Part shown: positions 41,001 through 47,243 of the stretch, piece after piece
Numbering within the stretch: position 1 is the first letter of the stretch
How the letters are laid out: each line of letters starts with the position of its first letter
Source of the DNA: Ministeria vibrans ATCC 50519
Lineage: Eukaryota; Protista; Filasterea
NCBI GenBank assembly: GCA_943704425.1
Contig: CALSCP010000348.1
Location: forward strand, 1 to 62,821
DNA: 62,821 nucleotides
Direction: 5' to 3'
Notes under the pieces: model-generated
The model's database searches: none
What the model was told of the DNA's origin: nothing
Seen by the model: the letters and a program-made list of their open reading frames with translations, nothing else
Program-made: the position numbers and the translations under genes

Positions 41001-44000
41001 ATGGCTAACCTTCGCGGCTCTGTAAGACTGCACCACTTGTTTAAGTACCACGACGGCCGACACTAACTGTTCGTGTGTAGCGCAAGCGCAAAGCGTCCGC
41101 GGTGGTCGACGACGACGACATTTTGTCGACGGCCAAAACGCCGTCTGAGAGTGGCGAGGATGTGTACGAGGGCATTGCCCCCTTCCTCGTCAAGGTGTAC
41201 GTCGTGGTCGAAGATGCCGCATGCGACGACATCATCTCGTGGGCGGCGAGCGGAAAGGTACGCGGCGGAGGGGGTGAAACCCAGGAGGGTTGACGTGAAG
41301 GGTCTTTCGCCGTTTTGCGCCTAACACTGCGCTCCTCCCGTAGAGTTTCATCGTACACGACCCGGAGCGGTTTGCCCGTGAAATTCTTCCACAGTTCTCC
41401 AAGAGTAAAAGCTTCTCAAGCTTTGTTCGACAGCTCAACATGTACAATTTCCGAAAGGTGAGAAACGACGAGAGGACAACTTCATCGTAACACTTGACTG
41501 CGCCACCCGGCTTGCGCCTCGCCGCTGCAGGTGATTCCTCCCAAGTCCGGCATCGATGTGCACACGACCGAATGGGAGTTTACATCGCCGCACTTCCGTC
41601 GTGGGCACTTGGAGATGCTCCGGGGCGTCAAGCGCAAGGGCGCTGCCACAGGCGCCGCGGGCACGGCCGGCGCCAGCACGGGCACGACCAGCGCACGTCA
41701 GCTCTGCAGCGAACTCGAGTCAGTCAAGGCAAAGCAGGCGGCGCTGCAGTCGCGGTTTGAGTCGCTCGAGACAGACAACAGAGTTCGACACGATACAAAA
41801 AAAAAAAAAAAAAAAAAAAAAAANNNNNNNNNNCGCCACTACACGACCCTTGTGCCATTGCGTATGTCATTGCGCCCGAACTGTTCTTTTTTTGCACAGC
41901 ACTTCTGAGCTTGTTTGTTGCGTGTGCTGCATTGCCGTGGTAGGTCATGCCGGATCATACGCACATGGCACTAAGACGGACGACGGCAGCTTTGACGGGG
42001 TGATCCACATGCCTGACGCGGTCACTGGTGAGGACGATGCGATTTTTGTCGAGCCGCGCAGCCGTTATGCGAGCGAGCTCAACTTGCCGGCGGACTCGAC
42101 GGCGCCCTCGTCGGTCGTCTTCCGTGCCAGCAGCATCAACCAGATTGGCGCCGGTGCCGTTCTCGATGCCATTGTGGGGCCGCCACGACAGCAGCAGCGT
42201 CGCGACGCAGACGCCGGCAGCGATGACGTCGAGAACGTCTTGTCGCGCGCACGCCGTGCCTATCCCACCAACAAGGTGTGCGGCATGGCGCTTGTGGCCG
42301 ACTGGACGTACATCTTGCGCTTTGGCGGCATCGAGGAGGCCTTCAACGAGATGGTCTACGTTGTCAACGAGGCAAACCTCATCTACCAGGGCACGACCTT
42401 TGCCAACGCCGTGACTGGCGTCAGCCTGAACATTGTGGGGCCTGTCGACTTCTTCCCGGACTCGTCGACGTCGCCGTGGGCGAGTGCGTCGGCGTCGAGC
42501 GACTACCTTCCAATCCTGCAGACGTACGGCGCATCCAATGGCTATAGTGGCGTGTGCCTGGGCCATCTGTTTGTCCACGCCAACATGGCTCCTTCCTTTG
42601 ACGTACGAAACCCATTTACACGAACGCTCCTGTGGGTCGTACACGCAATAATAATAGTTATTAATAATAATTGTTTTACGTGAATGCTTTAGGTGGGTCT
42701 TTCCAACCTTGCCGTCTCGGGATTCAGTGGGGGCATTTGCGACGACGGGGCAAACGGAAAGATCTTCAACGTCGGCTGGACCACCTCCAACTTCTTTGAC
42801 GGAACCTTCTCGCGCATCCGGACCGTGATCAACTTTGCGCACGAAGTCGGACACAGCTTTGGCGCGGTCAACGACAACGAAGGCGATAACGCAAACGTTG
42901 CCGCATGCAACCCGTCGGACGCCAACGGCGGACTCTACATTATGACGGACACCATTCAGTCGGGATCGCTCGACAACAACGACGCCTTCTCGTCGTGTTC
43001 CATCACCGACATGTCTGCGATCATGACGAGCGCTGGATCATGTTTCACCGACGCCATTTCCTCCGCTGTGTGCGACTCGAATCCGTGCGCGAACGGCGGC
43101 ACCTGCCACAAGTTCAACTCGGGCTTTTACTGCCAGTGCGCCACTGGCTTCCGTGGAACCACGTGCGGCACAGCAGTGGGCGCGACCACTTGCGCCTCCG
43201 ACCCGTGCGCAAACGGCGGTACCTGCATTGAGTCGGCTGCACTCGACTCGTACGTGTGCTACTGTCCGTCGGGCGTCGTGGGCGATGCGTGCGAGACGGT
43301 CGTCGACGAATGTGTCTCGTCGCCGTGCCAGAACGGTGGCACTTGCACAGACGGCAGCCTTTTGTTCACATGCGCTTGTGATCCAGGTTACACTGGCACC
43401 ACATGCGAGACGGACATTGACGAGTGTGGCGGAATCAAAGGCGTGTCGCAGGATGCAGTTCCACTGGCGACCGTTGGCTCATGGTTCCAGCGTGGTGGAT
43501 CGGCCGGCATCATCACCATTTCGGGTGACACAGCCACCGTCACAACGGGACCCTCGGGGTCGTTCACATACGCGACGGCAATTTGGACGCAGTTGGCGAG
43601 TGCTTCGGGCGTGTGGAAGTGGGAAGTGACTGTTGTCAACGCGGCATCGGCGACTCTCTACGAGATGTTCATTGGCATCGTCGACTCGTCCGCACTGACC
43701 ACGACGGGCACCAACTACATTTTGGGCGGCGTGCAACCCTCGTATGGCTACGCGCCCAATGGCGAATTTTTTGCCTCTGATGGCAACACGGAAACTGTCG
43801 TAGCGTACGGTTCAAGTTACACCACAGGTGACGTGATTGGTGTGTCGCTTGACGTTACCTCAAACACTCTTGAGTTCCTCCTCAATGGCGCGAGTCAGGG
43901 AACCAAGTCGATTGTCGCAGCCAGCGGCGACGGCTACGTGCTGGGCGTGTCGATGGGAGTTGTCGCGCAGCAGGTGAAGGTCACCGACCTGGATTACTGT

Positions 44001-45604
44001 CTCAACGGCGCAACCTGCGTCGACGATGTCAACGGTGTGACATGCGTGTGTCCATCAGGCTACACTGGCAGTCGCTGTGACTCGGACATCGACGAGTGCT
44101 CTGAGGGCACGCCCTGTCAGAACGGCGGTACGTGCACCAACTCTGCTGGTTCGTTCTCGTGCGCGTGTCCTTCGGGCTTTGAGGGCGACACGTGCGATCC
44201 CGCCAATGTGGGAATGACGCGATGCCGCGTTAAGCTGTTCTGCGAGAGTGGCACGCCCACGATTACGACGCAGAATCACGAGGACAGCGACAACGCCATC
44301 ACGGTGGGTGGCTCGTCGTCGGCGTTGTTCACGAGTACGCCCATTGGTACGAGCCTGACATTGGTTGATCTTGATGCGTTTGGCATCAACCATTCGCTCG
44401 GCTCGAGCGACTTTACTCTGACGCTCCTGATCGACGGAAATGCAGTGATGGATATTCGCGAGACGCGCACGTCGACCACGTCGAGCTGTCAATTCCAGGT
44501 CGCTGGTGGCGGTGGCGCCGTGACCACTGGTCAAACGCTCGGCTCCTGCACCGTGACACGTCTTACTTCCATCTTGACGTAAAGAAGTGAACAAGATCAT
44601 TACCACATTCATTTGATTCATTTGACATAATATTTGGTTGTAACTTTGTACCATTATTATTCGTATCATGCCATATACCTATCCTACCAACGAGCCACCT
44701 AAGACCTAAGTGACCGTGGTGACTAGTGACGGACACTAATCATTGACAGAATTGTCTGCGTCAGTGGTTGAGCCGAAGTTGAGTCCGATACCAGGTCTCA
44801 CTGCAGTCCGCTTCCCGATTCTTTCTGCAACGTCCCTCTGCCTCAGGGCCCAGGGGAGTCTCGGCGACCCCTCATACGGCACGTCTGTGCGACTGCTTCT
44901 TCGCTGCTTCTTCTCTCAGTGACCCCCCCAGAGTGTTCCTGCCCAGTTTTGTGTGGGTGCATCCTGACTCCACTGCCGCTGACCGCTGGGGAGTTGTTCC
45001 CCCCACTTCCCTGTGCGGCCGTGTGCTTGTCCCGATGATCTGGCTATTCTGGTGCGTTTCTGGGTTTTGATATGTGCCGTTCTCCAAAGCGTGAGAGAGG
45101 TGTGAGACCCCTGTCAAATAATTATAATAATTATATTTATTTTGTAGTTGTCTGATAAACGAGAATTTTTCTTCCGTCTGGTTTTTTCTCCATGCTCGTG
45201 TTCGCTGTTCTTGCTACCGTCCTAAGCGTGGTGAGTGCGACGCACCAACGCCATCCGTCGTCCTTCACGATGAGTGATTATGAGTTGACAACAGCCAATC
45301 TCGTTGCGACGGCCGAGCATCGTCGCCGCTCGACCAGCCACATCTACGACCTGTCTCTTGATGTGTTTGGCACGTAGGCAGAATGATACTTTGGCATCAA
45401 TTTGTGTCACATTGTTTTTTTTTTGGTGTTCGTTTTTTTTTTCACACTGTTCTCAGTACCATTGAGCTTCTCCTCGAAGCGGACGCCAATATCCCAAGCG
45501 GACTGCGTCTCCGAGTCCACGACGCATCTGGTGCGCGCGAAGAGACCGTGGGCGCGAACAAGTATCTCGTTGGCCGTGTGAAAGGTTTTGCAACGAGAAA
45601 AAAA

Positions 45605-45635
<31 letters not shown>

Positions 45636-46342
45636 CACACAACTCGCACTTACTCTTCTTTTTATTTTTGATCTCAATCCTTGTGCAGCTGGTGCAATCG
45701 TCGATTTTTGACCTGCGCGACCGCTACGAGAACCAACAGAACACGATCAACAGGATCATGCAGTTCCTGGCGCAGATGGTGACGCAAGGACGCGCGCGCG
45801 TCAGCGGGAGCGGCGGCAAGCGCTCCACCATGCTCGATGGCGGCAGTGTGTCCGCAGACCCCTCGCCCGCCGTGCCTGTGGTAACCAGCCCAGGCAGCAC
45901 TCCAACCACGACGACCTTACCCGCCAAGGCAACCATCACCCCACTCGACGACGACGGCGCCCCCACCACCTCTGCCCTTCCCATCGACTCCTCCTCATGG
46001 GCCGTCGTCCAAGCCCACCCCCTGTCGCTCCTTCCCGCCGCTGCCGCCGCTGCTCCTGTCACGACCGCCCCGACCACCACCACCACTACCACGACGACTG
46101 TTGACGACCTCCCGGTTGCAGCCTTGGTCGACGATACCCACCAGCTCCGCGAGCAGATGGATCTCATCCAGAACGACTTGTACAATATCGAGCAGAACCT
46201 CGAATCTGTCGACGACTTTGAGTACGCCATCTCTCTGCACTTTATAGCAGCAGCCTCACAAAAACTCCTCTCACATGCTGTCTCGTCTCTTCTTTACAGC
46301 CTTGATGAGGATGACTTCCTCAACCTCTCTACTCCCCTTTGA
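41001..46342 (+). CDS. HSF1: Heat shock transcription factor; intron 41783-45688 holds the permuted ADAM-like gene
   Basis: DNA-binding domain [50 protein letters not shown]; the HR-A/B heptads are split ESLETDNR | [27 protein letters not shown] across a phase-0 GT-AG intron. Confidence 0.9.
41944..44582 (+). CDS. Exons 3-4 of a secreted ADAM10/17-like metzincin with EGF repeats and a SPRY-like domain
   Basis: Prodomain [19 protein letters not shown] cleavage site, [26 protein letters not shown], Met-turn [14 protein letters not shown], 5 EGF-like repeats, SPRY-like ([32 protein letters not shown]). No TM helix. Confidence 0.85.
44743..45117. mobile_element. Possible solo-LTR or MITE-like segment
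   Basis: Terminal inverted TTGACAG...CTGTCAA (with TG..CA inside), non-coding, C/T-skewed unlike the AT-rich spacers. No target-site duplication seen. Confidence 0.25.
45192..45584 (+). CDS. Exons 1-2 (signal peptide and N-terminal prodomain) of the same ADAM-like gene
   Basis: [16 protein letters not shown] signal peptide; [16 protein letters not shown]...KYLVGRVK(G); the phase-1 donor at 45585 matches the phase-1 acceptor at 41943. Confidence 0.8.
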
Positions 46343-46430
46343 GCCATTTGCTTCTCTTGATTCTTCTTCTTCCTCAATACACCTTGTTTACTTACTTTAC
46401 ACCCTGCTTCTCCACCCCTTCACGTCCTCT

Positions 46431-47243
46431 TCACGTCCTCTTCGCCTCTACGGCCTCTCGAATGACACGCACCAGCAACTGGTGCTCTTCCCTGTGCATC
46501 CGTTCCTCGAGTGTCTCAAGCGTGTCCGTCTCCTCAATCCCCACACGCGTCACCCCAAGCACCTCCCCTCGATCGAGCACCGCTGTCGCCCTAGAAAGAC
46601 AAGACATGAGTTGTCTGAAATTTTACTCGGTGGGCTCACCTGTGCACCATGAGTCCCGTCTCGGCGATCTCACCGCGCTGGTACGCCTCGAAGGCCCTCG
46701 CTACAGGATGTGCGTTAGCAAAGTCTTTCCGCCCCCCCGTTTCTTTGCTCACCGATGGCATTGGCGCCGTCAAAGGCACCCGGAAGCGCCGGATGCAAGT
46801 TGATGATGCGCCCGTCAAACCGACTCACAAACGCCTCCGACAAAATGTGCATCCAACCCGCAAGAACAATCATGTCCGGCGCATACCCCTCAATCATCTC
46901 GGCCAGATCACGATCAAAGTCGTCGCGCGAGCCTCCCGCATCACGAACCGCTGACAATAGGATATCAATCCACACAGACACACACACAAGTCATCCAATC
47001 CAACCTTTCAGCGACCGGTACACCGTCTCAATCGACGCCTTTTCTGCTCGAACAAGCCCATACGCTGCCTTTCTATTGGACACCTGGATCAAATGCACAC
47101 GGTGCGGCGTGTGAGGGTCGCAGTGAGCAAAGCAGATTTACCACCGCCACAATTTTGGCCTTCACGTCTCCCGACTCAATCGCATCAATAATCGCCTGCA
47201 AATTAGTCCCGTTGCCACTGATCAACACAACAATCCGGAACAT
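46431..47243 (-). CDS. ADE8: Stand-alone phosphoribosylglycinamide formyltransferase (PurN/Ade8); multi-exon
   Basis: RIVVLISGNGTNLQAIID, SNRKAAYGL.RA, IVLAGWMHILS, INLHPALPGAFDG, TGLMVH, LDRG, EH. Confidence 0.95.

Follow-up and report, generated by a model that had tools for sequence, protein, structure and literature searches.

A permuted ADAM-like gene in an HSF intron of Ministeria vibrans is very probably a collapsed tandem gene pair misjoined through homopolymers

The window analyzed here is the 62,821-nt stretch of Ministeria vibrans ATCC 50519 DNA represented by contig CALSCP010000348.1 (assembly GCA_943704425.1, referred to below as G000). On its forward strand it carries an HSF gene whose 5' exons lie at approximately 41162-41257, 41344-41457 and 41531-41782 (41162-41782 overall, ending at a phase-0 donor) and whose 3' exons, delimited by RNA contigs, lie at 45689-46221 and 46300-46342 (45689-46342 overall). 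Pfam HSF_DNA-bind matches 41344-41457 (E 1.3e-13), and an HSF-type DNA-binding domain is therefore present. Introns of ~86 nt and ~73 nt are spliced out among the 5' exons in RNA contigs, and X7 RNA contigs also show the splice from 46221 to 46300. The assembly letters place the donor GT of the intervening intron at 41783-41784 and its acceptor AG at 45687-45688, both in phase 0, in agreement with an earlier note made from the sequence alone. The RNA junction between 41782 and 45689, which that note had suggested looking for, was found in a poly(A)-RNA contig from X20 with 251 and 39 letters on either side. This splice fits an ordinary intron of ~105 nt and is equally compatible with a long one. 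The HSF region is single copy in G000, where a search with the HSF intron tail likewise matched the window alone.

In the assembly, this HSF intron encloses four ADAM-like exons on the same strand in the order 3, 4, 1, 2, as the earlier note had read them. The first two belong to a unit designated copy A (41944-44585), which consists of exon 3 at 41944-42602 (659 nt), a 90-nt intron and exon 4 at 42693-44585, the coding part of which spans 42693-44582 and is followed by the stop codon. The 3' end of copy A intron 2 precedes exon 3 at 41887-41943, as drawn from the assembly letters and the contigs of X3, an independent sample. After a spacer of 606 bp (44586-45191), a second unit designated copy B (45192-45597) provides exon 1 at 45192-45373 (182 nt), an 83-nt intron, exon 2 at 45457-45584 (128 nt, phase 1), together with the initial 13 nt of intron 2. 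The phase-1 donor of exon 2 and the phase-1 acceptor of exon 3 are compatible, and the linear splices from HSF to ADAM and from ADAM to HSF are out of frame, both as previously described. The exon coordinates of the intact four-exon reading frame proposed in that description also held; the RNA splice from 42602 to 42693 fixes the exon 4 acceptor and brings the four exons to 953 codons, not 952, and the frame does not represent one gene.

Copy A has reprolysin/ADAM-type (M12B) catalytic-domain homology, based on matches of Pfam Reprolysin_2, Reprolysin_4 and Reprolysin_5 to exons 3 and 4, and it also matches Pfam EGF and SPRY. The translation of exon 4 departs from the zinc motif HExxHxxGxxH by an Asn in place of the third His. 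Exons 3 and 4 are strongly expressed, with a depth of ~3700 in the RNA contigs, and the loose end of an RNA contig places the poly(A) tail of the copy A mRNA at ~44627. Upstream of 41942, RNA contigs from both X7 and X20 run into an exon 2 ending K-F-L-V-G-R-V-K that differs from exon 2 of the window at 4 of 23 bases. The reading of the four exons as a single complete gene fails on this point, since RNA joins exon 3 to another exon 2. The window's own exon 2 was seen in X7 only as an unspliced contig with a depth of ~6, compared with ~3700 for exons 3 and 4, and the predicted RNA junction from 45584 to 41944 occurs in none of the contigs listed. A 23-25-nt pattern for the copy A exon 2 DNA, derived from the loose end of the RNA contig, had no match in G000 or in JGI metagenome contigs, and a search of G000 with the copy A intron 2 tail and the start of exon 3 returned no copies besides that in the window. 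Protein searches were carried out with the ADAM exons one at a time. The exon 4 search for a full-length transcript-derived ADAM was dominated by EGF proteins and yielded exon-sized ORFs only, the exon 3 search returned one paralog fragment, and HMMER, run with exon 3 against representatives, did not find a close full-length protein.

A candidate for the missing start of copy A occurs on G000 contig C969, which ends 56 nt past an ADAM exon 1 whose length (182 nt) and phase are those of exon 1 in the window. A kinase gene, not HSF, lies upstream of it. The terminal ADAM exon of C969 is probably exon 1 of copy A; a pattern derived from it had no match in the metagenome contigs, and its protein search gave no match.

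Evidence for a second gene body comes from L050, an independent 3633-nt contig holding a near-identical second ADAM copy. It reads A22, representing an A-run of 22 nt or more, followed by 48 nt ending in AG and then by exon 3. The first 37 nt of its exon 3 contain 14 mismatches to the window, within 41950-41980; in total 37 mismatches were counted, and outside that segment divergence is ~0.9% as far as 44555. The 3' end of L050 leads into a flank of the type found on G000 contig C2014 (97.7% identity), which itself opens within an ADAM 3' end (95% identity) and then runs into another gene. Comparison of L050 with the window, together with X3 depth, thus delimits a near-identical tract of copies A and B at 41981-44555 (2.57 kb) that is collapsed in the assembly. 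The order across the spacer was confirmed by its collinearity in three independent contigs, L023, L024 and the X3 contig covering 44510-45588, each of which carries exon 4, the spacer and copy B exon 1 in window order; L023 (in part) and the X3 contig additionally reach copy B exon 2. The tail-to-head boundary between the copies therefore exists as real DNA.

Depth was taken from contigs of X3, not from the source reads of the assembly. It amounts to 250-300 in the HSF flanks and in the hydrolase contig, 445 in the ADAM body (41888-44416), 171 in the spacer and copy B head and 288-304 in the C2014-type end. At least two genomic copies are thus represented as one with raised depth, as X3 depth, L050 and C2014 all indicate, and the depth comparison of the ADAM block with its flanks that had been proposed as a check thus came out raised for the ADAM body in this independent sample. 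The depths of the two exits, into the spacer and copy B head and into the C2014-type end, sum to approximately that of the ADAM body, although the values of 171, 304 and 445 depart from the simple 1:1:2 ratio expected of a homozygous tandem pair.

Both junctions of the block are suspect: the left one consists of A27, N10 and a foreign 53-mer, and the right one of A26. In the assembly letters, A27 occupies 41797-41823, the N10 scaffold gap 41824-41833 and A26 45598-45623, as had been noted from the sequence. No contig crossing the gap was found among those listed from four runs, and continuity across it is unsupported. The 53-mer at 41834-41886 (forward strand) matches at 100% the interior of a nucleoside-hydrolase coding region on G000 contig C1980, whose ORF is identified by Pfam IU_nuc_hydro (E 1e-58). 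In X3 the same 53 bases have one context only, midway in an unbroken 4287-nt hydrolase contig, while the X3 contig of the ADAM side begins at 41888, within a short T-run of copy A intron 2. The 53-mer marks a chimeric contig end. Because the bases at 41834-41886 are foreign, the two flanks of the gap are discontinuous. An integrated circle would require continuous DNA at both junctions between host and insert; this does not hold on the left, and no contig listed from the independent data spans the junction on the right.

On the HSF side, the true 5' end of the intron comprises 14 nt and then the A-run (41783-41823). An X3 contig over 41000-41783 carries 40 extra letters, ~13 of them intron bases and the other 27 presumably the A-run of the HSF intron. 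The true 3' end, as given by the assembly letters and the start of an X3 contig, comprises 65 nt at 45624-45688; that contig, covering 45650-46500, starts ~41 nt upstream of 45650, inside the HSF intron tail. X3 contigs begin or end at A26, no contig among those listed from the four runs (X3 included) bridges either A-run, and no contig or read crossing any of the four half-introns was seen. The A-runs had been put forward as direct repeats bounding the unit; nothing sets them apart, 20-40-nt runs of A or T being common in this assembly. The window has no A-runs of 16-23 nt and five of 24-27 nt, and a hard assembler limit at A-runs of 24-27 was considered and rejected when another 200 kb of G000 proved to contain A-runs of 33, 36 and 40. 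With A-runs of up to 40 nt in the assembly, the assembler was not strictly incapable of reading through A26, which counts against a misjoin there.

We conclude that the permuted ADAM gene in the HSF intron is, with high probability, the product of a tandem pair that was collapsed and then misjoined at homopolymer runs. The block at 41834-45623 is most likely foreign to the HSF intron and derived from a locus with two tandem ADAM-like (reprolysin-EGF-SPRY) genes, of which 45192-45584 is most likely the start of copy B, the tandem neighbor of copy A. Two copies with distinct 5' exons and 3' flanks, the 53-mer, the tail-to-head joint and the HSF splice were all observed, and the steps by which the error would have arisen are reconstructed from them. 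Copy A would consist of an exon 1 probably at the end of C969, an unassembled exon 2, and exons 3 and 4 at 41944-44585. Copy B would run from its exons 1 and 2 at 45192-45584 through an intron 2 with an A-run into exons 3 and 4 nearly the same as those of copy A, and then into C2014. Collapse of the 2.57-kb tract to a single copy may have left an A-run hanging free behind copy B exon 2. At a presumed true length of ~105 nt, the HSF intron holds an A-run too, and the assembler would have fused both at 45598-45623, making A26 the site where ADAM-B intron 2 was wrongly connected to the HSF intron. The other end of the resulting contig would be chimeric and start with the foreign 53-mer, and the scaffolder would have set this contig after the HSF 5' contig across the N gap, probably guided by true HSF mate links. 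On grounds of parsimony, copy B exon 2 would pair with an L050-type exon 3 across the A-run, both ends being A-runs, and pairing these two half-introns gives a normal intron of ~87 nt. Parsimony and the RNA splice likewise suggest that the HSF 5' half pairs with the HSF 3' half across the A-runs. The model leans partly on contigs from other samples, some of them ~2% diverged. The underlying biology is ordinary, namely tandem secreted reprolysin-EGF-SPRY genes with near-identical bodies and diverged 5' exons. In its exon structure, copy B agrees with a paralog on contig C386, which has exon 1, exon 2, a 57-nt intron and exon 3; other introns in this region measure 73-90 nt in RNA contigs. The earlier note had rated an assembler loop, in which collapsed tandem ADAM copies are joined through poly(A), as at least as likely as its alternatives, and our results favor that option.

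It is highly unlikely that the block truly lies within an HSF intron of ~3.9 kb or longer, as a nested insertion or as an integrated circle that arose when the tandem ADAM genes recombined. In G000, one contig does run across A26 from copy B exon 2 to the tail of the HSF intron, the HSF splice does not discriminate between a long and a short intron, and crossing over of copies A and B in tandem would yield a circle with exactly the exon order of the window. Against these points, foreign sequence follows the gap at the left junction, the junctions are bridged by no contig among those listed, copy A exon 3 requires exons 1 and 2 of its own that are missing upstream, copy B carries on elsewhere (C2014, L050), the ADAM block differs in depth from HSF, and other introns are just 57-90 nt. 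The excisable or integrated circle of the earlier note is likewise unsupported, since the unit combines two paralogs. Unlike extrachromosomal circles from tandem genes, it draws its exons from a pair of genes whose 5' ends differ, and none of the present data shows a circle. Like an intron-nested gene, it appears in the assembly as coding sequence on the same strand within the intron of another gene; unlike one, its first half has no gene start and its second half no gene end.

We also consider it very unlikely that the misjoin is real and 45192-45584 is an orphan, a partial duplication that comprises exons 1 and 2 and lies behind copy A, with the L050/C2014 copy having another 5' end. The near silence of copy B exons 1 and 2, seen only unspliced, would suit such an orphan, as would the X3 depth of the spacer and copy B head (171), which is below the ~300 of the C2014-type end; moreover, exon 2 and L050 are connected solely through their shared A-run ends. 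Both exons nevertheless retain open frames, splice sites and the phases of the family, no third version of exon 1 or of exon 2 from this ADAM subfamily was found in G000, and matching the A-runs restores an intron of normal size.

It is exceedingly improbable that, in the sequenced strain, the HSF intron and ADAM-B intron 2 genuinely underwent a reciprocal exchange at their A-runs, with both derivative chromosomes merged by the assembly. The right junction (copy B exon 2, A-run, HSF 3' part) resembles one such derivative; the left one (HSF 5' part, A-run, L050-type tail) was not found in G000, where a search for the copy B intron 2 tail and exon 3 start was also negative, HSF is single copy and normally spliced in RNA, and the 53-mer would stay unexplained. 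A scenario in which the copy A tail and copy B head were excised as a circle by tandem crossover and reintegrated at the HSF A-run, with the 53-mer as captured filler DNA, has a similarly slim chance. Expression of one permuted gene by trans-splicing or back-splicing from 45584 to 41944 is hardly credible, as the phases of the two sites agree but abundant mRNA links exon 3 to another exon 2 and that of the window is a trace, unspliced species.

A misjoined, collapsed tandem pair combines features of known assembly errors. Textbook signatures of mis-assembly include wrap-around of collapsed tandem repeats and rearrangement via repeats (Phillippy, Schatz and Pop 2008, PMC2397507), and the same paper warns that rearrangement mis-assembly can mimic biological rearrangement. 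As in a collapsed tandem repeat (PMC2397507), adjacent near-identical copies are merged, a tail-spacer-head boundary is wrapped, depth is raised and unique sequence flanking the second copy is found on contigs of its own, C2014 and probably C969. Unlike in that case, the dangling end was fused to an unrelated locus via a homopolymer instead of being left as a contig end, and the copies are identical over 2.57 kb only, their 5' exons being old paralogs. As in rearrangement-type mis-assembly (PMC2397507), unique sequence is shifted between repeats, here the A-runs of two introns; these are homopolymers of ~26 nt and not a dispersed element, and one junction is a gap with a chimeric contig end.

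For users of this draft assembly (2860 contigs), the locus is a caution that homopolymers can move a block into an intron of another locus. An exact look-up of the copy B exon 1 ORF, and of a chimeric 319-aa ORF at the right junction, returned no record. The misjoin makes a permuted gene and a 3.9-kb intron appear where neither exists, and it is also the source of that spurious 319-aa open frame (45383-46342), in which ADAM exon 2 is fused to HSF.

The ADAM-like block in the intron of the heat-shock-factor (HSF) gene is very probably an assembly error of a known kind, in which a collapsed tandem repeat is combined with a repeat-mediated rearrangement, both recognized forms of mis-assembly (PMC2397507). 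On the forward strand, the HSF 5' exons, with an HSF_DNA-bind domain on 41344-41457 (Pfam), extend up to 41782, and the frame restarts at 45689. The GT donor (41783-4) and AG acceptor (45687-8) lie where the earlier note placed them, and the RNA junction that it had proposed was found, with 41782 spliced to 45689 in a poly(A)-RNA contig of run X20 (251 and 39 letters on either side). The intron starts with 14 nt, followed by A27 at 41797-41823 and a 10-N gap; its 3' end consists of 65 nt after the A26 at 45598-45623 and closes with the HSF acceptor. If both A-runs are one run, the HSF intron is ~105 nt long (14 nt, run and 65 nt), comparable to the 73-90-nt introns elsewhere in the window. HSF is single copy in the genome assembly (G000).

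ADAM exons were searched singly, exon by exon. In the window, all on the forward strand, the block comprises a 57-nt intron tail (41887-41943), exon 3 (41944-42602), exon 4 (42693-44585), a 606-bp spacer, a start exon (45192-45373) and a second exon (45457-45584) followed by 13 nt of intron, with Reprolysin, EGF and SPRY domains across exons 3 and 4. Exon phases are as previously described. The reading of these exons as one complete gene in the order 3,4,1,2 fails, as RNA joins exon 3 to another exon 2. Two runs, X7 and the poly(A) library X20, yield RNA contigs that span exons 3 and 4, including the 42602-to-42693 splice, and that extend upstream of 41942 by ~330 nt of sequence absent from the window. 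Over its final 30 letters this upstream sequence encodes ...K-F-L-V-G-R-V-K, against ...K-Y-L-V-G-R-V-K in window exon 2, and the two differ at 4 of 23 bases. Window exons 1 and 2 are represented in X7 by one unspliced contig only, at a depth of ~6 versus ~3700 for exons 3 and 4. The different RNA exon 2 and the contrast in expression thus identify exons 3 and 4 as part of a highly expressed gene, copy A, whose own exons 1 and 2 are absent from the window; its exon 2 was not found anywhere in G000. The abundant copy A mRNA carries a poly(A) tail after ~44627, 42 nt past the stop codon (X7 RNA contig). Another G000 contig, C969, terminates 56 nt beyond an ADAM exon 1 that has the length (182 nt) and phase of window exon 1, with 43% protein identity, and it is likely the start of copy A. 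The gene upstream of it appears by eye to be casein kinase 1-like, with a weak Pfam match. In the zinc motif of the highly expressed copy (42839-42876), Asn replaces the third His of HExxHxxGxxH.

Window exons 1 and 2 most likely belong to a tandem neighbor, copy B. The intron after window exon 2 runs into the A-run, and a contig of X3, an independent data set from this same organism, spans 44510-45588 with 32 extra unplaced letters, which by position would be 9 intron bases and ~23 A's. L050 (3633 nt), an independent contig from Logan, opens with 22 A's and a further 48 nt that close with AG. In its exon 3, the first 37 nt (41950-41980) hold 14 differences from the window, its body beyond 41980 differs by only ~0.9% up to 44555, and past 44555 it continues into the end and downstream gene of G000 contig C2014 (97.7% identity). 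C2014 itself begins within an ADAM 3' end (95% identity to 44232-44555) and then enters a different downstream gene. The layout of L050 indicates a complete gene for copy B, with an A-run leading into the rest of intron 2; the half-introns of window exon 2 and L050, when joined, would form a normal ~87-nt intron. The paralog on C386 is organized alike, its exons 2 and 3 being separated by a 57-nt intron. Two more independent sequences, an ENA metagenome scaffold (L023, matching 42023-45544) and a Logan contig (L024, matching 42627-45363), are collinear with the window, so that copy A, spacer and copy B head represent a true tandem arrangement. The 2.57-kb near-identical tract is phased directly by no contig; the copy A entry was paired with the spacer exit on account of the very high expression of both, and the copy B entry with the C2014 exit since the two occur together in L050.

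At the left border, the 53 nt to the right of the N gap (41834-41886) match C1980 at 100%, mid-exon in an inosine-uridine nucleoside-hydrolase gene (Pfam E 1e-58). In X3 this 53-mer lies within an unbroken 4287-nt hydrolase-gene contig and the ADAM contig begins only at 41888, so the sequence right of the gap opens with a chimeric piece, and there is no support for its two sides being continuous.

X3 contig depths gave the comparison of block and flanks that had been suggested: 445 for the ADAM body (41888-44416) versus 250-300 for the HSF flanks, with 284 for the hydrolase contig, 171 for the spacer and copy B head (44510-45588) and 288-304 for the C2014-type end. Coverage of the body is raised, and the depths of its two exits sum to approximately that of the body, as expected when a repeat has been collapsed (PMC2397507). 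At 171, 445 and ~300, the spacer with the copy B head, the body and the C2014-type end stand at ~1:3:2, with single-copy contigs at ~285; this would fit a copy-number polymorphism, in a heterozygote carrying one ADAM copy on one haplotype and two on the other.

Taken together, the evidence favors what the earlier note had offered as an alternative and rated at least as likely, namely collapsed tandem ADAM copies joined through poly(A). Genuine insertion or exchange in the strain that was sequenced is improbable, even with all such readings taken together. An excisable or integrated DNA circle, the note's leading proposal, was rejected along with a nested or a permuted gene, given exons from two copies and a left junction made of a gap and a chimeric 53-mer.

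As for how the misassembly arose, G000 commonly contains A-runs 20-40 nt long, so two introns with one each are unremarkable. No A-run crossing was found among the reads and contigs examined, and the model rests partly on contigs from other samples. The assembler would have merged the 2.57-kb tract of copies A and B, leaving copy B exon 2 without a continuation past its A-run. That A-run may then have been overlapped with the one in the HSF intron, yielding one contig of ADAM block, A26 and HSF 3' half, which the scaffolder would have set behind the HSF 5' contig, probably via true links between the HSF halves. Window homopolymers are bimodal in length, with the 16-23 nt class empty and five runs at 24-27 nt (10729, 21689, 41797, 45598 and 47247). 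A T-run adjoins the other N10 gap of the window (13407) and one gap in a sampled G000 stretch (L040); another gap (L036) adjoins a C-rich stretch. Gaps at homopolymers suggest that contigs of this assembly often end there.

The ~99% identical tract of the tandem copies (window 41981-44555 versus L050:108-2682) begins 37 nt into exon 3 and ends 27 nt before the stop codon. In the 5' exons (window 45192-45584; L026:1501-1682), the first exons have only ~43% protein identity, and the promoters show no relationship. Such a pattern resembles the outcome of gene conversion or concerted evolution confined to the gene body. C2014-type letters at 44341-44540 are not tied to a particular copy when samples are compared: in L023 and L024 they occur in the copy that precedes the spacer, X3 has them exclusively, X9 and X20 have the window type only, and X7 expresses both, a distribution that suggests alleles or conversion tracts that are polymorphic. 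Lengths also vary between samples: L023 is 35 bases longer at 42657, where an AT-rich intron separates exons 3 and 4, and 11 bases of an AT-rich spacer part (45121-45131) are missing from L023, L024 and one X9 contig. The false join also creates a 319-aa open frame (45383-46342, forward strand) that links ADAM exon 2, via lysines read from the A-run, to the C-terminal exon of HSF and that a gene caller could report as a fusion protein.
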